Positions 28,612 through 59,384 of a stretch of DNA of 64,000 nt are shown piece by piece. The stretch lies in the NCBI RefSeq assembly GCF_052425735.1, contig NC_135771.1, positions 3,534,001 to 3,598,000 of the forward strand, written 5' to 3'. Under the pieces are notes generated by a model, which worked only from the letters and a program-made list of their open reading frames with translations, was not told the origin of the DNA and did not search any database. How positions within the stretch are numbered: position 1 is the first letter of the stretch; each line of letters starts with the position of its first letter. The DNA comes from Oculina patagonica (lineage: Eukaryota). The position numbers and the translations under genes are program-made.

Positions 28612-31077
28612 ATGCGTGCTGTTGTTGTACAACTGCTGGTTGCCTCGCTTTCGTCCTTGGCACTTACAGAGGGCTCAAGAACAATATGCCAGCGGCCACC
28701 CGCGTGGACGATCAATCAACTGAACCCAATGGCTGAAGCGCGATCAAAAGGTCACGTGGTAATCTTGGGATTGATGCTTGCCAGCTGACGATTTTGTCAG
28801 TGGCAGGCTGAGCGCTTGAACCTCATGTATAAAAAAATTGTTGTGAAGAGGTAAGATGCGAGAAATGCCTTGTCAGTTGCGTGTGTTAAAAAAAAACTGT
28901 CTGATGCCACGACTTTTCTTCAACGCTTTTTGACTTGACCACAGGCAGACCACCCTATGTGTTCGTGGTTAATAATTGTTGCCATAAATAAGATTATGTT
29001 GAAATCAATGGCGCATATAGAAGATATATAGAGAAACATTACGTCGGCTAGTGTGGCACTTTTGTAGAGCTGCGTGCCGCAAATTAAGAAGGAAAGGGGG
29101 GGGGCCGTTAAAAAAATTTTTTTTGGGGGAGGTTTTTTTATAAAAAATTTTTTTTTTTTTTTCTTATTTTTCAAAAAAAAAGGCGAGTTTTTTTTTTTAT
29201 TTTTTTTTTTTTTCGATTTACTACAAAGTCGACGTAATGTTTCTTTATATATCTTCTATATGCGCCATTGATTTCAACATAATCTTATGTCAAAAATTAT
29301 TAACCACGATCACATAGGGTGGTCTGCCGGTGACTTGACTTCCGTTGCTGCAAAAGCCGCACAACGTTTTCAAGCCTCAAACCCCAAACTTGAAATGCCC
29401 CTCTATTCGATTTCAAGTGAAAAATCTTTCGGTTGGCCAGGTTGGGAATTCGAGTTTACTATGAGCTACTTTATTCTTACAATAACAGAAAAGTAATGCT
29501 GGTTTTGAAAAAAGAAAGAAGAGTTTACAATTATTGTTATCCATCGGAAATACACGAGCAATCAGTAGCAGGATACGCCCAACATTTTGTAAAGTAACCG
29601 TAGAGTGAGTAGGTTTAATTTTCTTAAAATTCTGCTGCACTGCGCGTCTGCTGCGAAGCTCTTGTTTAGGCCACCGCGCCTTGCACAAGAAGCAAATGTG
29701 CTAATTTTCTAACACACTATCACTTTAATTTCCTTACTACAGGAATATCACTGATATTTCTTTCATGATTCTGAACATGAAAAAAGCCGCAGCCTCGATC
29801 TCTGAGTTAGAAAGGAGAGTCTCGTTCCCAGTCTACCAAGAGCCAGCCAATCGAGACATCATGGCAATGCTGGGTGGAAAGAAAGACGACATGTTGATCT
29901 ATGATCGATGTGGACTCTTAGTTCATCACTGGAAGATGCCCCTGAGCTATATGGGATATTCATTTGTCTGGTAATTAATTTAACAAGCTCTGCATTTTAC
30001 TTTTTCGGAGATCCGTATGCAACCATCGTCCCAAAATCTACTTCAGGCTAAGATGGCCCCACTTATTATACCAAGGCATGAGAGATGCGTTGGCCTAATG
30101 CATGGTTAGTGCGCTGGACTCTGGATCGAACGGTCTGGGTTCGAGCCCTGGCCGGAGTCATTGTATTTTGTTCTTGGGCAAGACACTTTACTCTCACAGT
30201 ACCTCTCTCCACCCAGGTGTATAAATGGGTACCCCGGCGAATTGTAGGGGCAACTTGACAGAATGCTGCAAAGTAACTTGCGGTGGACTAGCATCCCATC
30301 CAGGGGGGGGGGGGGGAGGGAGGAGCGTAGCAATACTCCTAGCTGCTTCATGTTACAGAAACCGGAGTTACGTGCCGAGAGCTTTGAGTCAGTTGAGCTT
30401 GAAAGGCTTTACGTTTTCGTTGCTAAAGGAACAGACGTAGTAGCGCAAAATATGAGAACTTTATACGTACGTGGAAATTAATTCTTAATTGCCAATCAAA
30501 TCAACTTTGTTTTCGAGGGGCACGAGTCTTCGACGACAACCGTGGCCCCGGATCCCGACGAATTGGAATTTAGAAGTGTTGGTTTTGTGGAGGGAGGAAA
30601 ACCGGAGAACCCGGAGAAAAACCCCGGAGCAAGGACGAGAACCAACAACAAACTCAACCCACATATGGTATCTGGCAGGAATCGAACCCGGACCACATTG
30701 GTGGGAGGCGAGCGCTCTCACCACTGCGCCATCCCTGCTCCCCCAAAATACCATTTTTAGATATTTTCACTTGATATAGGAGAGAATTCGTAAATTCAAA
30801 AAGCTTTGTTTGTGTTCCCAGGAATTCCTTAGTGAACGTTTATAACAACAAGATTCCAAATTGTCAGCCACATTGTCCAACAACCGCCATGACCCAGTCC
30901 CCGACAACCATGCCTATTACGTCACAAGAAGTTTCAACCAATCCCACTTCAGAAAGTGCTACGTCACAGCCTCGACTTGAAACTACGACTAGGTCGTCAC
31001 CCGTGACAACGAAGGAAACATTCAACAGTAACGGAGTAAACCAAAGGAATGTAACAAGCGAAGACGAAACGCCATAA
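28612..31077 (+). CDS. SELENOP: Selenoprotein P-family protein, single Sec (U59 in a URFC motif), 3 coding exons, 240 aa, Thr/Ser/Pro-rich tail
   Basis: Exons 28612-28850, 29743-29970, 30822-31077 (phase 2/2). Signal peptide, CQRPPAW, GHVVILGLMLAS-TGA(28786-28788)-RFCQWQAERL, FPVYQE, LGGKKDDMLIYDRCG: SelP N-terminal domain hallmarks. SECIS downstream. Confidence 0.93.
28940..29332. mobile_element. Palindromic TIR element with 7-bp TSD in SelP-1 intron 1
   Basis: ~110-bp inverted arms (CACAGGCAGACCACCCTATGTG / CACATAGGGTGGTCTGCCGGTG); TSD ACTTGAC; the centre is homopolymer-rich. Confidence 0.8.
30080..30412 (+). mobile_element. tRNA-derived SINE with CORE-like body, SelP-1 intron 2
   Basis: A box TGGCCTAATG..GG, B box GGTTCGAGCCC, then CTTGGGCAAGACACTTTACTCTCAC..CCACCCAGGTGTATAAATGGGTAC. 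Confidence 0.8.
30495..30744 (-). mobile_element. tRNA-derived SINE with the same head and core as 6493-6746 but a different tail
   Basis: Minus strand GGGGAGCAGGGATGGCGCAGTGGTGAGAGCGCTCGCC..GGTTCGATTCC; near-identical to the 6.5-kb copy for ~185 bp. Confidence 0.85.
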
Positions 31078-31307
31078 AATAGATAAATATTTTATTCCTT
31101 AAGATTAATTTTTGAGTGTCGTTTAAGTGTATTTTAATAGCATAGTAATTTTTATTCGCCAGGATAACTTTGGCGCCCAAGTTTTTTAATCTGGAAGCTT
31201 TGTTAAAACATGACAAGCAGACAAAAAAGTGAAAGTTGTTTGTTTCGATGAAAATCGACAAAGTGATAGAAAGAAAAGCGTCACGAAATAATTTTAATTT
31301 TTCTGAC

Positions 31308-31374
31308 AGCTCTTGACTCCTGAATGACGAAGTTGCATGAAACCATTAACGTGCTACTTTTGATGGTTGGAGCT
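31308..31374 (+). promoter_or_regulatory. SECIS element of SelP-1
   Basis: ATGAC (31324) / TGAT (31361) quartet; helix II GAAGTTGCATG / CGTGCTACTTT (11 bp, one mismatch); apical loop AAACCATTAA; helix I AGCTC / GAGCT; ~230 nt after the stop. Confidence 0.9.
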
Positions 31375-49823: not shown

Positions 49824-50813
49824 ATGTCTGACCTCAAAAACAGAAGCGGAGGACTAGAACCTGGGGAAGCCTTCAGCAAGCCGGTTTATTACGTCATCGC
49901 GGGTGTGTACGCGCTTCTCGCTGTCACAGCACTCAGTCTGAACACGCTCGTGCTTGTCGCGTTCGTTAGAGACCGCACTCTTCGCACGCCCTCCAACAGG
50001 CTGATTTTTAGCATAGCCGTCGGTGATTGGCTACATTCAGTGCTGGCATATCCCTTGGGAGTGGTCAGGAATGCGTCACAAAGTTGGCGCATGAGCGGTG
50101 CAACATGCACGTGGTACGCCTTCATTACAAGTTTCCTATCATTCAGCATCATATTACACTACGCTGTATTCTCTGTAGAGCGAGCTATCACCATTAATTA
50201 CTCCGAGACCCGGTTCTCCATTAAACGAAAGCTCAATTTCGTCATTGGCGGACTTTGGACATTCGCCTTGCTTTGGAGCCTTTTCCCACTGTTCGGTTGG
50301 TCAGCGTACGTTCCTGAAGGCGCAGGCGTGTTTTGTTCAATTCGCTGGCAATCTTCCCGCCCACGTGACATTGTTTTTATAGCATGTATATTCTTGTTCT
50401 TCTTTTTCGTACCCATCGTTGTCATGGTCATCGCTTACTCTTCGATTTACCTCAATATGAGGAAAATGACTCGAAATGCGCATGGCATGTGGGGTGAGGA
50501 CGCTGCTCCTACTGTGGAAGCTATTCAAGCAGAAAGAAAGACCGCACGCATGGCATTTATGATGTCAATTTGCTTCTTATTTGCATGGACACCGTATGCC
50601 GTGGTTTCACTGTATGCTATCATACTAATGCCGGAGAATATTTCCCCGGTGGTGGCCACCCTACCCTCACTGTTTGCCAAAACGGCGACGTGTTATAATC
50701 CAGTTATTTACTTCCTGTTGTACAAGAAATTCCGGGATAGCCTGGGGCAGACATTACGATCATTATGTGGACGCTTTATGAAACAAGACTCAAGTGCCTT
50801 AAACTGGCTGTAG
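49824..50813 (+). CDS. Opsin (cnidarian/anthozoan type), intronless CDS, 329 aa
   Basis: 7TM class A GPCR: LRTPSN, YVPEGAGVFCSIRW, FLFAWTPYAVVS, PSLFAK(286)TATCYNPVIY with the retinal-binding Lys (bovine K296 equivalent). A splice acceptor at 49791-49792 suggests a 5' UTR intron. Confidence 0.95.
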   Translation: MSDLKNRSGGLEPGEAFSKPVYYVIAGVYALLAVTALSLNTLVLVAFVRDRTLRTPSNRLIFSIAVGDWLHSVLAYPLGVVRNASQSWRMSGATCTWYAFITSFLSFSIILHYAVFSVERAITINYSETRFSIKRKLNFVIGGLWTFALLWSLFPLFGWSAYVPEGAGVFCSIRWQSSRPRDIVFIACIFLFFFFVPIVVMVIAYSSIYLNMRKMTRNAHGMWGEDAAPTVEAIQAERKTARMAFMMSICFLFAWTPYAVVSLYAIILMPENISPVVATLPSLFAKTATCYNPVIYFLLYKKFRDSLGQTLRSLCGRFMKQDSSALNWL

Positions 50814-51226: not shown

Positions 51227-53816
51227 TCACTTCGTGAGCGCTCGTTGCATAATACTGAAGTAGGAATCTCAGGCAACATATGCTAGCCAGAGCTAATCCA
51301 CGTTTACTTAAAACGTTGTGTTGTTGTTTACTTCTTGTACTTTGTGGACTGCGTATGTGAGGAGAAATGGACAGCATATGTGAGATTTAATAGCTATTTT
51401 TGATACTTTGGGATCAATTTTAAGCCTGTAATTAATGTAAATATACGTTTGTACACAGAATCAGTAAAAATATAACCGCGTCTTTAGGGCGCTTTTATAT
51501 TTTCTTCAGAGCGGCTAAATGCTTCACTAACGACCAAAGATACAGTGAGTATGGAAGTCAGGATCACAAAAGTTTGGGGTTCCAGGGCTGCGAGACTCCA
51601 GCCCCCCCCCCCCCCCCACCCCCCCCCCCCTTTTTAGGACTCTCCATGTGACTTTGAATCCTTGGTGCATACCAGGTATATCCCCTATATCCCATCCAGG
51701 ACAGGTGATAAGTCACACCACATGGAAAAAACTTTGCATACTACTGTAATTGCGATCTTTGCAGAGTTACACCTTTATCCCGATCTTTTCGATTTCCAGT
51801 ACCCTGGGTGCCAGAGGGTTTTTTTTTTCTTTTTTGCAGGAAAAAAAGCTATCATGGCTATTTTGATAATTTTCGCCCCCCACGATCGCAGTTTCGCCGC
51901 GCGCAAACAGCGTCTTTCTTGCAAAAAAGAAAAATTCCCTCTGGCACCCAGGGGAGATTTCCAGCCGCTTTTCGTGAAAATGACTGAGCTCACTGAAGAC
52001 CGAGCTTGCGCAGGGACTCGCGATTGAGAGAGGCGGAAATCGATCCTACTTCTTTTCGTCGGAGTGAGTAAAACCTCTTGGTGGATTTTGTCGTCTAGGA
52101 ACCTTTTTACGACAGCAAAATGAACGATAACACTAAAATTGTCGGCTAGACACCTCAGCAGACATGTGAAGAGAAAAAAAGAAATTGTCACCAAGTTCTC
52201 CTAGCTAACTTTATCGGAAATATATCGCAAACAGAAAGGAGAATCTACATTTTGATCCTGGGACTGTAGACTCTCAACAGGCGTTCTGTGCATGTCCTTG
52301 CCTGTGATTTTACTGAAATCGGATACAGGAAATAACATGACCCCTAAAGCGCAATCGGAGACTCTCGTTACAAGAAACCTGGCAAAGAAAGGCATTGTTA
52401 GTGTACGCCGAGGACAGAGCAGAAATCAAGCTCGGGCGACGCTATAAACCGTAAGTACAACATTGATACAATATTTAAAGGAGATAGCGCAACTCTAGAT
52501 AGATCATATTTTAGTCAGGGTTTTCCCAATACCATAGATTGATCGAAAGTAAGCGAGAATAATCTACTAACAATTTCCTCGAGGCAACATGCATTTACAA
52601 GGATCCCCGTCGTTCGATCAAGTCTTTTCACTCGTTTTCTCTCTTACACAAGAAAGCGTCGGTACAAACCAGCTTTAGGCATTGTAATTAAGCTAAATTT
52701 TGGCTAGTTTAATGCAGGCCTATCCGTAGAGCTCATTAGCAAATCGAATGACCGGCCGCCGAAACTCCAGCTTGACTCTAGTCGTGCCAGGGACGAACGG
52801 AAAGATCACCTTTCTTGTACCTCCGGATTACAAGATTTTCCTAAAAATATCTTGTCAATTGTGTAGATAGTAGTAAAAATATACTGTTTTAACCTCTCGA
52901 TAAGGTAGTGCCAAAGGGATAGCCTTTTCCTCCCACCGTTCGTAATTTGATGTGCTTTGGCGCATAACACATTTTGTAAAAGAAGATTTATTGTGATCAG
53001 TTAACTTTATTATAGTTTTGATTTGGGAACGGGGACTAAATACGCATAAGGGTTTTCTGAAGCCATCAGCAATATCCCATTCCAAAACCCATTTGGTGTA
53101 TACATTCACTACCTTCAACGATGGTTATCTTTATTGAATGCGGATGACTAGAGAAGGGAATTTAATGATGGCAATGTTCCAAAGTAGAGGCACATGATCA
53201 CAAAGTGATGAAATCTGCTCAAACCAAGACCAAGCAAAATTCTGCTCTGACGGAGTTGGAAGGAACAAAGTCCAAGTGTTGGATCCTAAATACGAGCTAA
53301 AATTTCATTTGTCAAGATTGCCCTTATTCCTTATTCGAGCGCGCAACTAGCAAAATGTTTTTCTCAACCATTTTCTTCTAGCTCCTTTACAGCCGTCACA
53401 AAATGTACGGGTGAAAGGTTACGTGACGTTTCAGAGTAAATGCTGCGTGGCAAATGAATGTATTCTGCAACTTCCGGATCGCGTTTACCAACTCGGTAAG
53501 AGCAAATAGCGGCGAATTAGACAATTAATGACTTATTGTTACTTATTTTCACGGTCACTTAATTTCGCGAAGATGGAACGGGCATATTTCGCAGGACTTA
53601 ATTTTCGCGATTTGGCCAAAAAATACGTAATTAACATAAAAAATACAATAGAAAACTTTTGAAATAAATTTTCGCGGGTTTTAGATTTTGCGATTTTTCG
53701 AAAATCGCGAAAATTAAGTCCCGCGAAAATAAGTAACAATAAGGTACAAAGCGATTTTATGCAACAAAAACATCGTTTTAACATCCACATTGTTTTAATA
53801 CCGCAGGAATTTCAGT

Positions 53817-56800
53817 ATGGCGACGGGAATATTGAAATTTCTCGTCGTCGCACTTCTTGCTGTGACGCTGTCGAGTTCGACTTCCACCTGACAGTGACAA
53901 TGACAACTGCCAGACCTGGGTCCAGTCCCCAACGACCGGGCAGATGGGTCCGTGGTAGTCCTGGGGATGATAAACTCCGAATGACAACACAACATCTGAT
54001 GACAGGCCGACTGTCGCGTCCAGGCCACTGAGAAAATGGCTCAGATGCGACAAGTCGCCAGTGACAGGTACAAATATTTTCTTTGCTTGTTTATTAAGTT
54101 ACTGTCTTTCGCACCCACCATTTCGGTCGAATGAGGGCTCTTGTTGGTAGAAGCACGCTTAATAATGCGTGCCATCGCGCATTGTATTCTCACAGTTATC
54201 ACATCTGTTACTTAGCCTAAAGCCGGTAAAGCTGCTTGGTTATTTTTTTAGAAACTTATAAAAGCGAAAGAATCTCACCAAAATGTTTGGAATGAAAACG
54301 ACTTTTTAAATTAACTCAGGGAGTATTTTCTTGAAGAATGAATTTCAAGTTCCAACATGTATTTGAAAAATTGCCGAGGAAGCCAAACCAAACTTGGAAC
54401 AAGAGCTTCATATAATTTTTAGGTTTTCTCATATTGTATTATCACCATCGTTGCTCATCCTCAGTTCCTGACGTGTTTCTGTCATTTGCCCCCGGGGGGG
54501 GGGGGGTACTCCCATAAATTTCGGATAGGGGTGTGCCGCCAAGGTTCTTTAACCCTGACCCTATTTAAGGATAAAGAAAGCGAAAATTGATACCCTTTTA
54601 AAGGCCCAAAACCGAAAAATGACACCCTATTCAAGGGGAGGAGAAGCGTTCCATGACGACCCAAATAACGGCTAACCGCGCACGGCAACATACAAATCTC
54701 TATAAAATCGCTTTACTAATACAGTAGAACCCCGGTAACTCGAACTCGGATAACTTGAACAACCCCGCTAACTCGAACATACTTCCATTTCCCTTGGATT
54801 TGAACTCACTTTTAAGTCATTTTTACTCGGTTAACTCGAACTCGGATAACTCGAAAACCCCGCTAACTCGAACTAAATTTCATTTCCCTTGATCAAAATT
54901 TGGGTCAAATTTACCCCGATAACTCGAATTCCGGTTCTTGCAACTCGCCACGGTTGCCCATTTATTAGAGCAACAAAACAGATCACCTATTTGACAGCCT
55001 TTTTCCACTCTTATCCTAAAAATTTATGATCGTATTAGAGTTTCTGACGAGATAAGTTTAATTTGCACTGTGCTGTATACTGAGGTGCTGGAAAATCAGT
55101 AAGCTATCAATTATTAACTTGGCAAATTAAATATTCAATCTACCCCGATAACTCGAAACTCCGCTAACTCGAACGGTTTTTCGTTTCCCTTCAGAGTTCG
55201 AGTTACCGGGGTTCTACTGTAACTGAACAGTAAATTCAGTTTTAAAATACCTTTTTTTGGTTTAGCTGGGCGTTTATTTTAACTTATAGAATTTAGGTAC
55301 CCTATCTAAGGATCACACCGGGAACTCATTGCCAAAAGGAGCAAAAATGATACCCTATTTAAGGACCGAGAACCTCAAAAACCATACCCTATCGGGCGGC
55401 ACATACCTATATAGGCCACATATGGGAGTACCCCCCCGGGCATTTGCCAAACACATTTTTTGTAAAACTTGGACATTATTAGGTCTCCTAGAGGCCTGCT
55501 TCTTGTTCGAGATCCGATAAAAGGTGATAGAGGGTTCAATTTCTCTTGTATTACGTTTTGTGGAGTTTGAGATTGGTCCAAATCAAAGCTGGAGAACAGA
55601 AAACACCGAAAAACTGAAACATCATAAAACTGAGCAACAACCACTAAAAAGACATCAGCAGCTGGGTCGGTTTGTTCAAAGCACAATTAAGCAAAGCCAG
55701 GTTTAGAATCAATTTTGATTTCACCTTTTTAACTTTTCAGTGATGATTTCTGTTTATATCTTCAGTCCTCCAGTTTAAACGTCAACTAGTCTCAAACTCC
55801 ACAGAACATAAGCAGTGAATAAGGAAAACACTTTTATACAAGAGAAATTGAACCCTCGATCAACTTTTAACCCAGGGTTAGTGCTAATCGGCTTTCGGAC
55901 AACCCGGCCTGTAATCAAAATTTACGCTTATCCTGGATTAACTTAATCGTGCTTCGAACAACCCGGCCCCGATGTTATTTTTTGTGGTCTCTCTCGCATT
56001 TTAGTGTATTAATCCCTGGGAAACTGAGCTTGTCATTGCTGATAATGTTCTAACATGTTTGCATCGTTTCTTTTCACAGCAACATGCCCGACATTGTCTT
56101 CATGACAGTAGTTGGCCAGGGTGTTTTCACGCAGCCATGGAATCAAACTGATGACATGTTTGAGGAGCCTCAGCCAGGTCTGTTGTCTAAAATCTTAGGG
56201 GATAAGACAAGTGGAATGTTTGTTTATAATCGCTGTGGAAGCCTTGCAGGAGAACTTCAGTTGTTCCCGTTGGTGCCGTTAGATCCTTCGGAAGTGACAA
56301 ATGAATGGTAAGTCTGTTTATTAGTTTTTCCGGCTATGTCTAGCAACGGAAAATTCTGCTCTGTTGTCACGGAGATTTCGCAGATTTTTGGCCTAAACCG
56401 CCCTGAAATTAGTGAAAGGCACCTAACCCATAAATCACAATATCTTTGAACATCTGAAGGAAGATATAACCTTAATTTGCGGGTAGAAATCAAGCTACGG
56501 CTATAGATATTGTTTTTTTTAAAGACGTGTGGAAACAATTTGAAAACGTTTGCCGAACGTTTTCATATTGCAATCCGTTTCCATCCGCGCCATCCGCAGC
56601 CAAAGATGCCCGTTAACAGTTTTAGTGCTCTAATATAGCCATTTTTAATAAAAATGGACTATTATTCTAGATTTCATGCGAAACAAACATAAATTTTGGA
56701 TGTTCAAAAATCTGGTAAAATTCGTGACATAGTCCCTTTAAGCAACATATAAAACCAAAATGGCGACATATACCTATAATTGACATTGGCTTGGACCTCC

Positions 56801-57135
56801 ATGAAAGTTGCAATAATAGTTTTGTGTTCTATTAGTTTTAGTTATTCTAGATTTGTCATTGGCCATTTGCTCTTTGTGTTGGTTATTCGTGTAGGTCTGT
56901 TTGTATTCGCTTTCTCAAGTAAGTCTCAGAAGTGTCTCGATTCTTCAAGCGATAATTCGTAACCCAAACATCTCTACACTGGCTGCTCTGGAATCTCTAA
57001 AACTTAATTTTCTTTGTGTTTCTCAACAGGAACATCATCAGAAAAGCCTACAATAAGTGCCCGCAATGCAACAAACCAGCGCCAACCACTCCAACACCTC
57101 AACCTGAAGACGAGACAACTACCAGTCCACAGTAG
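53817..57135 (+). CDS. Divergent selenoprotein P-family paralogue with six in-frame TGA codons (putative Sec), 3 coding exons, 194 aa
   Basis: Exons 53817-54067, 56080-56307, 57030-57135, with the same phases as SelP-1 and an identical 228-nt middle exon. Translation: MATGILKFLVVALLAVTLSSSTSTUQUQUQLPDLGPVPNDRADGSVVVLGMINSEUQHNIUUQADCRVQATEKMAQMRQVASDS NMPDIVFMTVV...LGDKTSGMFVYNRCG...EW NIIRKAYNKCPQCNKPAPTTPTPQPEDETTTSPQ*. TGA at 53889, 53895, 53901, 53982, 53997, 54000. Two SECIS-like elements downstream. Confidence 0.85.
54491..55440. mobile_element. CCCGGG-terminal MITE with 8-bp TSD, SelP-2 intron 1
   Basis: TSD CATTTGCC at 54483-54490 and 55441-55448; same terminal design as 16631-17055. 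Confidence 0.88.
54722..55219. mobile_element. Tc1/mariner-type MITE nested in 54491-55440
   Basis: TA|CAGTAGAACCCCGGTAACTCGAAC...GTTCGAGTTACCGGGGTTCTACTG|TA; many TAACTCGAA subrepeats. Confidence 0.9.
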
Positions 57136-57320
57136 TTCAAAATGCGAAGGAATAAATTTATAGGTTTTGTAGAGTTACATTAATTATGCTAATGATTAAT
57201 TAATCGTATTTTGTTACTGTCATCTCAATTGTAACCGATTCGAAACTTGTGAACACGTCCGTCTTAGAACATAGGAAAAATGTCAAAGGCAACCTGATTT
57301 TCGTGTTAACAAACTTGTTC

Positions 57321-57564
57321 TAGAGCGACTTTCAATTGGCTTTCGTAAATTCAAAACCAGGCTCAACACAACAAACACAAATAACGCTATGAACCAATCA
57401 GAATTCTGAAAAAAATTCATGCAACACGTGCCAAGCGCGGGAAATCGCGCGGGTTGCCAAATGACGATTGGTTTCGTTCCCACTCTTGATTGGTTAACAG
57501 AAATAAAGTCTTTCTCTGATTGGTTAAAGCACTTTTTGTAGATAGTCAATTGAAAACCGTTCTA
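57321..57564. mobile_element. Dispersed palindromic MITE family member in the SelP-2 3' UTR
   Basis: TAGAGCGACTTTCAATTG...CAATTGAAAACCGTTCTA with CCAATCA/TGATTGG motifs; relatives at ~14250-14555 and ~63155-63514. Confidence 0.75.
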
Positions 57565-57732
57565 CTACGGATAGAAACAAATACTCAAGCGAGATTTTTT
57601 ATTCAAATCAAGTAGTTTCTTTCTTTATATTTGACATTATTATATACGCGGAATCGTATTGCCTTTTTAAACGCGTCACGGGTGCGAATATCAGGAGAGA
57701 GAGGGAAAGTCTAAGTTCCAGCACTAGAAACA

Positions 57733-57796
57733 TGATGACTTATGAAGAACAAGCGGCAAAAAGTTTTAACTGTTTGTTTTGATGGTACGGTCATTA
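57733..57796 (+). promoter_or_regulatory. SECIS element 1 of SelP-2
   Basis: Helix I TGATGACT / GGTCATTA; ATGAA (57742) / TGAT (57780) quartet; helix II GAACAAGCGG / CTGTTTGTTT (10 bp); apical AAA at 57758. Confidence 0.85.
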
Positions 57797-57844
57797 ATTT
57801 TCTGCTGAGAGCTAAGAAACAGAACATTTCATTGTGAGTTCTCT

Positions 57845-57912
57845 GACTGGTTTGTATGACGAGCTTACAGTAAAGGTAATTAATTGTAAGTTTTTGAATT
57901 TTTTTACCAGTC
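57845..57912 (+). promoter_or_regulatory. SECIS element 2 of SelP-2
   Basis: Helix I GACTGGT / ACCAGTC (perfect); ATGAC (57856) / TGAA (57895) quartet; helix II GAGCTTACAGT / ATTGTAAGTTT (11 bp plus one extra T); apical AAA at 57872. Confidence 0.85.
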
Positions 57913-58898
57913 TACTCGCACATGAAAGGAGTGAGATTTCAGAACGAATTTTGTGCCCTGGTGTTACGTTGTAAAAGAGGTAATAAAATCGATTCTTATA
58001 AAATACTGAACATTCCTGTATTTGATAGTGTTGTACGAAAAACCCCTTTTCGGCTCTCAGGGGCGTCTATCGATTGGATTCTAGGGTACGTCTGCTTTTG
58101 CAGGCTACTATGAAAGTTGTTAGAAAGAAAATAATAATAAACAGTTACTGAACTATAACATTTCAGTATAGGCATGGAGGATGGAAAAATATCGATAGTT
58201 TTGTTTCATACTTTTCGACATTGGTGGATTAAAAAACCCGCGCGTGCGCGCCGCTCGTGCGATGGCTGTTGATTGACAGACGGCGCCCTTATATCCAATC
58301 AGATTGTGAATAGACTAGTGCCAATAAAATACCCAGTGACCCAAAAGTTAGAAGGCCTGGAAGAATTATACACGCCCGGACTAACTTTAAGTTACTAAGT
58401 CTAGCGATGTGCGCTTTAATTTTAAACACAACAACAGCAGTAAGGTGGACTGCTCTACATAAAATCATTTCAAAGAAACTTAAAAAGGTCTTGCGCAATA
58501 AAAATATTAGTCATGTACTGGGACGCGTTTTCATTGACAAGTAATTAACATGAACAAATTAATTTAAGACAACAGACAAAATCAGTATTTGCCATCGAAA
58601 ATACTACTTTGGTAAACTGTACTTTCGTCCTTTTTGTGTCCAAAGACGTTTAACAGTGGATTTCGGTACATGGTCGTAACGTTGATATGATTGGCTGATT
58701 TATGTAATGGGCCCACTCACAAGCCTCTTGAAAAGAAAAAGTTGCGTTGTCTGAACAGTGAATTTCTCTACACAACATCGATTAACTAAGTGATCACCAA
58801 AATTGAATGGTCTAAATGCTCAAACAAATTCTCTCAACTGGCTTTATAGGAAATGTTTTGAGGCCAGTTAGGAGAATTTCTTCTTTGCCTGTGGAGCA

Positions 58899-59384
58899 TC
58901 AACAGTCGCAAATTCCACCAATACGACCACAACATCGGTGCGGTTCTTTCAAACCACGACACAGACACTTGTCAGTTCGGACATGTTTGACACAAAATCC
59001 TCGACATCTGCGATCTCCTTTGGCAGGGTGATGAACCCAAGACGAAACCAGGTTTATGACGAAGTCCACTTTCTCTTCAAAGCAGGACAGTTTTTGTTCC
59101 AAATTGGAGAAGTATTCTCGAACTTCTCCCCTCATCTCTCGTAGCTTGGTGTCGAGATCTTTGATTTCTTGTTCTTGTCTGTCTAAAGCGTCATGCAGCT
59201 CCCGGATGTAGTCGTCGCGGCGGTCACGTGGTTGGCCTCTCGGCAAAGCGTGGTCACGGAAAAGCGCCGATTCTAGTGAACCATCGCGACTTCTTCGTGG
59301 TCGATCGATATCTTCTCGTACTATAGCTTCGTTACTTGGATAAAAAATCTCTTCATCGGAATCTTCGAATTCGTCGTTGTACAT
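58899..59384 (-). CDS. Uncharacterised intronless 161-aa protein: acidic N-terminus, coiled coil, Cys/His-rich C-terminus
   Basis: ATG with an upstream in-frame stop; GC-richer than its flanks; heptad region IRELHDALDRQEQEIKDLDTKLREMRGEV..LEQKL; eight Cys in the last 35 aa. Confidence 0.7.
   Translation of the reverse strand: MYNDEFEDSDEEIFYPSNEAIVREDIDRPRRSRDGSLESALFRDHALPRGQPRDRRDDYIRELHDALDRQEQEIKDLDTKLREMRGEVREYFSNLEQKLSCFEEKVDFVINLVSSWVHHPAKGDRRCRGFCVKHVRTDKCLCRGLKEPHRCCGRIGGICDC

Follow-up and report, generated by a model that had tools for sequence, protein, structure and literature searches.

A stony-coral paralogue of selenoprotein P with a predicted cluster of six selenocysteines in its N-terminal domain

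Introduction

Two genes related to selenoprotein P (SELENOP, SelP) lie on the same strand of a 64,000-nucleotide stretch of the Oculina patagonica genome (NCBI RefSeq assembly GCF_052425735.1, contig NC_135771.1, positions 3,534,001 to 3,598,000 of the forward strand), hereafter the window, in which all positions are counted. The upstream gene, SelP-1, has a single selenocysteine (Sec, U). The second gene, 22.7 kb downstream, carries six in-frame TGA codons in one exon. It is very probably a real, expressed, four-exon gene of stony corals whose product is a secreted, thioredoxin-like protein of ~170 residues, with the UGAs decoded as Sec. Here, we describe its structure, transcription and splicing, the purifying selection acting on its UGAs and their exchange with cysteine codons, the conservation of its selenocysteine insertion sequence (SECIS) elements, and its paralogy to SelP.

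Results

Translation from the ATG at 53817, in the exon ending at 54067, yields MATGILKFLVVALLAVTLSSSTST upstream of the first TGA. The frame then runs through TGAs at 53889, 53895, 53901, 53982, 53997, and 54000, corresponding to codons 25, 27, 29, 56, 61, and 62, while direct translation of 53817-54067 contains neither TAA nor TAG. The splice acceptor of this exon is located at 53806/53807, after AG, and a GT donor follows position 54067. The exon encodes a predicted signal peptide, a U-x-U-x-U cluster, strand β1, U56, a UU pair, and Cys66. Joined together, the three coding exons (53817-57136) form one frame of 195 codons ending in TAG, which specifies a protein of 194 residues (Table 1). 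The initial annotation had described six TGAs without TAA or TAG, followed by a GT donor in the phase needed for joining, and both translation and spliced contigs bear this out. Its inverted Sec layout also stands for the read-through frame, with all Sec in the first 38 residues of the mature protein and a short Sec-free tail. By contrast, its placement of the TGAs in exon 1 has to be revised: the 5′ letters of the contigs map to ~52389-52450, so the TGA exon is exon 2 of four. This untranslated first exon was located from the 5′ ends of the orthologous transcript L003 and from 40 unmatched letters in record 1 of contig X13. At the 3′ end, the X13 contig reaches 57927 and X27 reaches 57952, and the orthologous transcript L007 stops just past the matching AAUAAA.

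Table 1. Features of the six-UGA gene and of the neighbouring SelP-1 gene, in window coordinates (UTR, untranslated region)
Feature	Position	Strand	Description
Non-coding first exon (5′UTR)	52389..52450	+	start is a lower bound; donor GT 52451-52452
Exon 2	53807..54067	+	ATG 53817; contigs X2 record 6 (0 differences) and X13 record 1 (1 difference in 257 nt) begin at 53807
First Sec cluster	53889..53903	+	codons 25, 27, 29; C after each TGA
Candidate recoding hairpin 1	53906..53959	+	3 nt past third UGA; RNAalifold, 10 orthologues
Second Sec cluster	53982..54002	+	codon 56 (canonical SelP Sec position), codons 61, 62
Candidate recoding hairpin 2	54005..54059	+	3 nt past UGA-UGA pair; RNAalifold, 10 orthologues
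Exon 3, 228 nt	56080..56307	+	core of predicted thioredoxin-like domain; WNQTDD N-x-T sequon, FVYNRCG motif
Last coding segment	57030..57136	+	CPQC motif, Pro/Thr-rich tail; stop TAG 57134-57136
3′UTR	57137..58000	+	3′ end approximate; AATAAA ~57982-57987
SECIS 1	57735..57794	+	Rfam SECIS_1 19.0 bits, E 1.4; AUGA ... AAA apical loop ... GA
SECIS 2	57847..57910	+	Rfam SECIS_1 27.4 bits, E 0.007
Paralogue SelP-1	28612..31374	+	three exons to 31074, single Sec ASURFC; SECIS 31315-31374

Spliced contigs of public runs confirm this structure. Four public runs with three coral species labels (organisms A, B, and C) were compared with positions 53500-58300. The joint 54067/56080 is found in spliced contigs of organisms A and B, with short overhangs only in organism C, while the joint 56307/57030 is present in contigs of all three; both are GT..AG. 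In organism B, one contig of 1460 nt matches 53807-54063, 56076-56306, 57029-57318, and 57370-57927 and so takes in all of the coding sequence and the 3′UTR through both SECIS candidates. The contig of organism A shows 0 differences to 53807-54063, and the TGAs are therefore not an assembly slip. Read depth is nil over the unique intron stretches in 54144-54465. The mature mRNA thus holds the TGA exon, joined at the two junctions that had been proposed from the genomic sequence. No part of the mRNA is better conserved between organisms A and B than this exon, with one difference in 257 nt versus 6 in 231. A processed retrocopy was considered as the source of the spliced contigs and is unlikely, given the single occurrence of the middle coding exon in the 529-Mb genome.

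Orthologues were collected with the Sec-free middle exon as query, which returned 17 close proteins, and with a profile, which returned 32 among 5.8 billion; none of these close family proteins carries a Pfam label. The resulting set comprises transcript contigs (L001-L009, L015-L019) and genomic loci (L010-L014, L021, L022) read upstream in frame. It contains thirteen distinct orthologues including the gene in the window, whose exon-3 identity to the latter ranges from 95% down to ~45%. All thirteen display the same arrangement of predicted signal peptide, U-x-U-x-U-Q, ~25 residues, U, 4-8 residues, and U-U-Q. Every internal stop codon checked is TGA and every terminator TAA or TAG, and across the 13 orthologues we found no TAA or TAG, frameshift, or decay in the TGA region. 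The surroundings of the Sec positions vary: the first cluster reads UQUQUQ, URURUQ, URUPUQ, or USUQUQ, and the insert ahead of UU has 4-8 residues.

Moreover, individual UGAs are exchanged with cysteine codons. At the fourth Sec site (codon 56), L010 has the Cys codon TGT, and L012, an independent assembly, likewise has Cys; the Orbicella protein falls into the 90% cluster of the protein from L010. Three residues past UU, a seventh TGA is present in L015/L016 and L018/L019, whereas L017 carries TGC. The Sec count ranges from 5 to 7. In an alignment of seven orthologues, 14 of the 152 ungapped columns have an invariant codon, and six of these 14 are the TGAs (hypergeometric P ~2e-7). Pairwise ratios of non-synonymous to synonymous divergence (dN/dS) range over 0.25-0.85 for the TGA exon and 0.17-0.55 for the remainder, with dS >1 between distant pairs; the TGA exon reaches only about half the dS of the other exons. 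The gene thus displays the general hallmark of selenoproteins, a UGA that is conserved or exchanged with Cys and flanked on either side by conserved coding sequence, and the TGA positions behave across corals as the initial annotation had anticipated. Taken together, TGA conservation, Sec/Cys swaps, and dN/dS below 1 effectively rule out a pseudogene and a non-coding leader. Named members come from Oculina patagonica, Orbicella faveolata, Montipora capricornis, and M. foliosa; the family thus spans the robust and complex clades of stony corals.

The relation to SelP is evident from gene architecture and from alignment. Both genes possess three coding exons, a 228-nt middle exon, and phase 2 at both introns. 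SelP-1 (...TICQRPPAW...GHVVILGLMLASURFCQWQA..., followed by a Thr/Ser-rich Sec-free tail) matches Pfam SelP_N with 64.3 and 23.5 bits and is the sole SelP_N match in the whole genome. A profile-profile comparison (hhalign) of the two middle-exon families gives a probability of 94.2% (E 1.2e-7, 36 columns), and tblastn pairs DLGPVPNDRADGSVVVLGMI with QLNPMAEARSKGHVVILGLM in the gene at 28612-31074 (E 0.01). In the alignment, U56 falls exactly on the Sec of SelP-1 (VVVLGMINSEU vs VVILGLMLASU), and U29 (UQLP; UQRP in other corals) lies at or near the cysteine of CQRP in SelP-1, with six residues deleted. Both correspondences had first been drawn by eye and are upheld by tblastn and the full alignment; likewise, the paralogy proposed on their basis is supported by the profile-profile comparison and the identical exon structure. 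Homology to bona fide members of the SelP_N family is thus detectable by hhalign, tblastn, and exon phases. A close relative of SelP-1 is labelled ‘selenium binding [Desmophyllum pertusum]’, and linkage of the six-UGA gene with a SelP_N gene in other corals is only hinted at.

The two hallmarks of SELENOP beyond this homology are absent. After strand β1 there is no UxxC motif: no partner occupies the +3 position, and U-x4-8-UU-x2-3-C/U is found instead. A Sec-rich or His-rich C-terminal domain is also lacking, as ~19 Pro/Thr-rich residues without TGA or His run follow CPQC. Which residue matches the Cys of UxxC can tentatively be read from the alignment. A profile search of 1.84 billion representatives returned 19 matches with no canonical SELENOP among them; the long matches P0030 and P0031 are spurious and belong to WD40 and pentatricopeptide repeat (PPR) proteins.

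In the 3′UTR, two SECIS elements are found, the number expected for SELENOP. Rfam at its gathering thresholds gives no match in the window, and the E-value mode was used instead. For calibration, the SECIS of the neighbouring single-Sec SelP gene scores 25.9 bits, and such scores are therefore normal for the Oculina genome. The last 230 nt of the 3′UTR are 77% identical among four species, whereas the remaining UTR has diverged in sequence and length. In five species, both elements adopt the canonical consensus fold of helix I, AUGA/GA core, 11-bp helix II, and AAA apical loop. Stem changes mostly preserve pairing, and double-sided changes affect one pair in one element and two in the other. 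The genome also contains four strong tRNA-Sec matches of 77-81 bits (cut-off 47). These are located at C3:14180605, C1:41886200, C1:44241195, and C1:41904558, two of them ~18 kb apart; weaker matches are grouped on C2 near 29.05 Mb.

The sequence around the UGAs is constrained as well. In 39 of 40 cases, UGA is followed by C, compared to a background of 24% C at first codon positions. Since the residue after UGA varies among Q, R, P, and H, the constraint acts on the nucleotide C. UGA-C is the weakest termination context in eukaryotes. Additionally, a conserved hairpin begins 3 nt past each of the two UGA clusters. In hairpin 1, 93% of alignment cells are paired versus 33-47% in slid controls, and four pairs are changed on both sides. 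The respective values for hairpin 2 are 89% versus 30-44%, with six pairs changed on both sides (a scripted count in either case), and hairpin 2 is predicted in each of the 10 orthologues when folded alone (z -2.2 to -4.5). When the complete alignment of coding sequences (CDS) is scanned in sliding windows of 60 nt, the main peaks of the structure conservation index (SCI) fall on hairpin 1 (0.76) and hairpin 2 (0.82-0.90, the strongest), and SCI is ≤0.13 from CDS nt 283 onwards. A third, weaker peak lies at the start codon (CDS nt 1-54, positions 53817-53870; SCI 0.48, mean z -2.4) and resembles the initiation-region structures reported for SELENOP mRNAs. According to Howard et al. and Mariotti et al., a stem-loop, the Sec redefinition element (SRE), reportedly lies a few nucleotides 3′ of a UGA in the coding regions of SELENON and SELENOP. 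Both coral hairpins may be SRE-like recoding hairpins, judging from their position and conservation; unlike the single SRE, there are two candidates, one per UGA cluster, predicted from conservation and covariation. The UGA-C context, the halved dS in the TGA exon, and the two conserved hairpins are new here.

The predicted protein may well be secreted. In all orthologues, a hydrophobic core (FLVVALLAVTL) lies behind a short N-region, as read from the sequences. The N-x-T sequon is invariant, and the mature protein carries the CPQC motif.

Discussion

Several points weigh against reading this gene as a thioredoxin-like, SelP-related selenoprotein. Full-length translation through the UGAs, and the choice between a selenium-rich redox or metal centre and a selenium carrier, are at this stage readings of the sequence. 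Pfam scans took Sec-free pieces of the six-UGA gene and of five orthologues, and against SelP_N these score nothing or 12.8-18.2 bits (E 0.0017-0.078). In this check, which the initial annotation had named, they thus stay below the cut-off of 23.2 bits; the sub-threshold matches lie at the right profile positions (100-168), and single exon pieces have no match in Pfam. For the Sec-free 118-residue part, AlphaFold gives a poor model (pLDDT, the predicted local distance difference test, 53). In Foldseek, all matches of this poor model are thioredoxin-like, weak (E 0.02-0.2, template modelling score 0.33-0.44), and without SELENOP among them. A sequence search of the PDB with both coral genes revealed no SelP-family structure; the only match below E 0.01 was a chance match to PPR repeats. 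Furthermore, both SECIS elements score below the Rfam gathering score of 35. Support for the hairpins is suggestive, as they lie in coding sequence and were scored on the sequences from which they derive. Finally, the four runs were only guessed to be RNA from their records, although the spliced contigs themselves indicate RNA.

Considering its sub-threshold SelP_N score, the lack of UxxC spacing, and the lack of a Sec-rich tail, the six-UGA gene is best described, on sequence criteria, as a divergent paralogue of the SelP N-domain and not as a SELENOP in the strict sense. It appears to be a SelP_N duplicate that predates the split of robust and complex corals, and independent evolution of the six-UGA protein is plausible. 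In a transcriptome comparison, Pfam SelP_N was found in Seriatopora and Favites only, whereas Montipora and Acropora had none (PMC11639872). It may be that complex corals keep the six-UGA gene while being without a canonical SelP_N gene. Two distinct truncated family members (P0021 and P0068) are recorded for Montipora capricornis, so that the family may be duplicated in Acroporidae.

We propose that the six UGAs would be decoded as Sec by tRNA-Sec and SECIS-binding factors recruited via the two 3′UTR SECIS elements. Recoding would be aided by the C after UGA, by the hairpin 3 nt past each UGA cluster, and by the low synonymous change in this exon. The first UGA is met only 25 codons from the start, and failed recoding would therefore be cheap. 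Selenoprotein mRNAs are subject to nonsense-mediated decay (NMD) at low selenium. As all UGAs precede two exon junctions, the six-UGA mRNA would be sensitive to NMD when selenium is scarce. In the mature protein, U-x-U-x-U would lie within a few residues of the start, its third Sec replacing the Cys of the SelP motif CxxPPxW, while U-x4-8-UU, followed by Cys or a seventh Sec, would replace the classic UxxC redox motif.

The Sec would in this model form a fixed poly-selenol/diselenide redox or metal-binding centre. We moderately favour such a centre over exchangeable selenium cargo, leaving some room for other or unknown functions, because the coral radiation has retained every Sec position, at a count of 5-7 in the 13 orthologues, and because three Sec replace the redox motif itself. 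A bolder and more doubtful proposal is that a single-Sec SelP site became a fixed six- to seven-selenium centre, with UGA-C, hairpins, and twin SECIS elements co-evolving as a recoding kit for dense Sec insertion near the 5′ end. Three Sec on the N-terminal arm would then face three at the active site and could form up to three diselenides or a metal cage.

The strongest competitor takes the Sec mainly as selenium cargo, making the protein a coral selenium carrier or store comparable to the vertebrate SELENOP tail. The protein is predicted to be secreted and related to SelP, and multiple Sec are found in no other SelP_N gene of the genome. The U-x-U spacing is also reminiscent of the end of human SELENOP. 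Two SECIS elements are likewise a property of multi-Sec SELENOP genes (PMC13134290). However, between lineages the Sec content of SELENOP cargo tails spans two orders of magnitude (PMC13134290, PMC2397514), whereas the number (5-7) and positions of Sec are fixed in the 13 orthologues, and three of the Sec take the place of the redox motif of the fold. We therefore regard a cargo role as possible, yet rather unlikely.

Recoding by Sec also has to be weighed against read-through of the UGAs by near-cognate tRNAs (Trp, Cys, Arg), which would leave the protein with little or no selenium. The leaky UGA-C context is nearly universal in this gene and would suit such read-through, and the selenium content is predicted from sequence. 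Against it, two correctly placed SECIS elements persist in a UTR that has otherwise diverged, swaps occur only with Cys codons, which is a signature of Sec, and one UGA falls exactly on the Sec of the paralogue. Moreover, six near-cognate read-throughs in a row would leave hardly any product. This explanation is consequently improbable.

Slightly less credible still is that the real product is the short Sec-free open reading frame (ORF) from Met73, with the TGA part as an untranslated leader or regulatory upstream ORF. This is how databases present the gene: KAL9950486.1, ‘hypothetical protein ACROYT_G042984 [Oculina patagonica]’, equals our product from Met73 on, bar an internal model gap. 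NCBI models in Oculina, Orbicella, and Montipora all begin past the last TGA and are labelled hypothetical or uncharacterized, just as the initial annotation had expected of standard gene callers, and gene callers on transcript contigs also take the short ORF. However, this ORF would be without the predicted signal peptide and without the first strand and active site of a thioredoxin-like fold. In this frame, the upstream part shows coding evolution (dN/dS <1), it can be aligned with the N-terminal region of the SelP paralogue, and it has a TAA, TAG, or frameshift in none of the 13 orthologues. The two conserved SECIS elements would be left without a role. A decaying SelP duplicate with TGAs as nonsense mutations, as six stops in 62 codons and the lost significant SelP_N score of the Sec-free pieces might suggest, can practically be dismissed, since the stops share position and codon in corals in which over half of the remaining residues differ, neither a frameshift nor another type of stop is seen, dN/dS stays under 1, and the spliced mRNA is abundant in contigs of several species.

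As a selenoprotein, the six-UGA protein would depart from known systems in where its Sec are placed. Nearly all known selenoproteins contain one Sec (PMC8557442). SELENOP has one in its N-domain and others in a variable, modular C-terminal tail (PMC13134290, PMC3473315), and its Sec lie overwhelmingly in the C-terminal region (2026 paper). With vertebrate and mollusc SELENOP, the coral protein shares a homologous N-domain, a Sec at the same position past strand β1, several UGAs, two 3′UTR SECIS elements (PMC13134290), and probably secretion. In contrast to these, its tail is Sec-free and not His-rich, the Sec count is fixed at 5-7, and U-x4-8-UU stands in for UxxC. Like fish SelPb (PMC2397514) and coral SelP-1, it is short and consists of a SelP N-domain without tail, and with SelP-1 it further shares the three coding exons, their phases, and a neighbouring locus. 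Single-Sec SelP genes, however, have one Sec in UxxC, one SECIS, and a clear SelP_N score, in contrast to six Sec and two SECIS elements here.

A raised Sec count on the N-terminal side rather than in a long tail is also known from amphioxus 3NSelP (PMC3473315). There, the whole N-domain is repeated three times with one Sec each and two C-terminal Sec are added, whereas the coral gene has six Sec in a single domain. Selenoprotein L (SelL) similarly has a thioredoxin fold and occurs in aquatic animals, and its UxxU places Sec at both redox residues to form a diselenide (PMC2397514). SelL, however, is from an unrelated family and has just two Sec, spaced as in CxxC; we saw no SelL paralogy.

Among cnidarians, Lobanov et al. 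(2008) report only a Cys homologue in Nematostella, and Jiang et al. (2012), who describe the multiplication of whole N-domains in amphioxus 3NSelP, did not find SelP in Nematostella. In the literature on selenoprotein P and on cnidarians and corals we found no prior description of the gene; the survey of Baclaocos et al. (2019) possibly holds cnidarian entries. On balance, an earlier description seems improbable, though far from negligibly so.

The interest of the gene lies in a dense, position-conserved Sec cluster inside a domain of catalytic type, as opposed to the extra Sec of SELENOP in a variable tail (PMC13134290). It bears on the limits of back-to-back Sec insertion, here 25 codons from the start, and on the mRNA signals that permit it; UGA-UGA and U-x-U-x-U with their adjacent hairpins offer a compact natural test case. 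It also bears on what poly-selenol/diselenide centres can do beyond UxxC, and on how corals handle selenium, oxidative stress, and metal stress. If confirmed, a fixed six- to seven-selenium centre would represent a chemistry known from no other protein domain. Because annotations of at least three coral genomes present the gene as a truncated hypothetical protein, it escapes transcriptomic and proteomic studies of corals.

Genomic surroundings

Upstream of the first exon by ~1.6 kb lies a single-exon gene for a rhodopsin-family G protein-coupled receptor (49824-50813, plus strand; 7tm_1, 141 bits). A 7tm_1 gene also adjoins the orthologues in L010, L014, and L021, and the neighbourhood is therefore conserved. 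On the other side, an ORF of 161 residues without Pfam family (58899-59384, minus strand) is convergent with the selenoprotein gene, and minus-strand ORFs of 162-171 residues are positioned alike in L010, L012, and L014. In run X2, a contig of 1086 nt spans 57765-58300 and continues beyond. The 3′ ends of the selenoprotein gene and the minus-strand ORF may overlap over SECIS 2.

The introns of both SelP-related genes contain repeats. In the intron past the TGA exon, ~1 kb (54478-55445) has inverted termini with G/C runs (...cccccgggggggggggggtactcccata..., ...tatgggagtacccccccggg...) and internal repeats with very deep multi-copy contig coverage; it looks like an insertion of a foldback or miniature inverted-repeat (MITE-type) transposon. 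In SelP-1 (28940-29330 and 30090-30750, in its introns), intron 1 contains a long, near-perfect inverted repeat around a poly-A/T core, and intron 2 holds two tRNA-like heads of short interspersed nuclear elements (SINEs) in opposite orientation.

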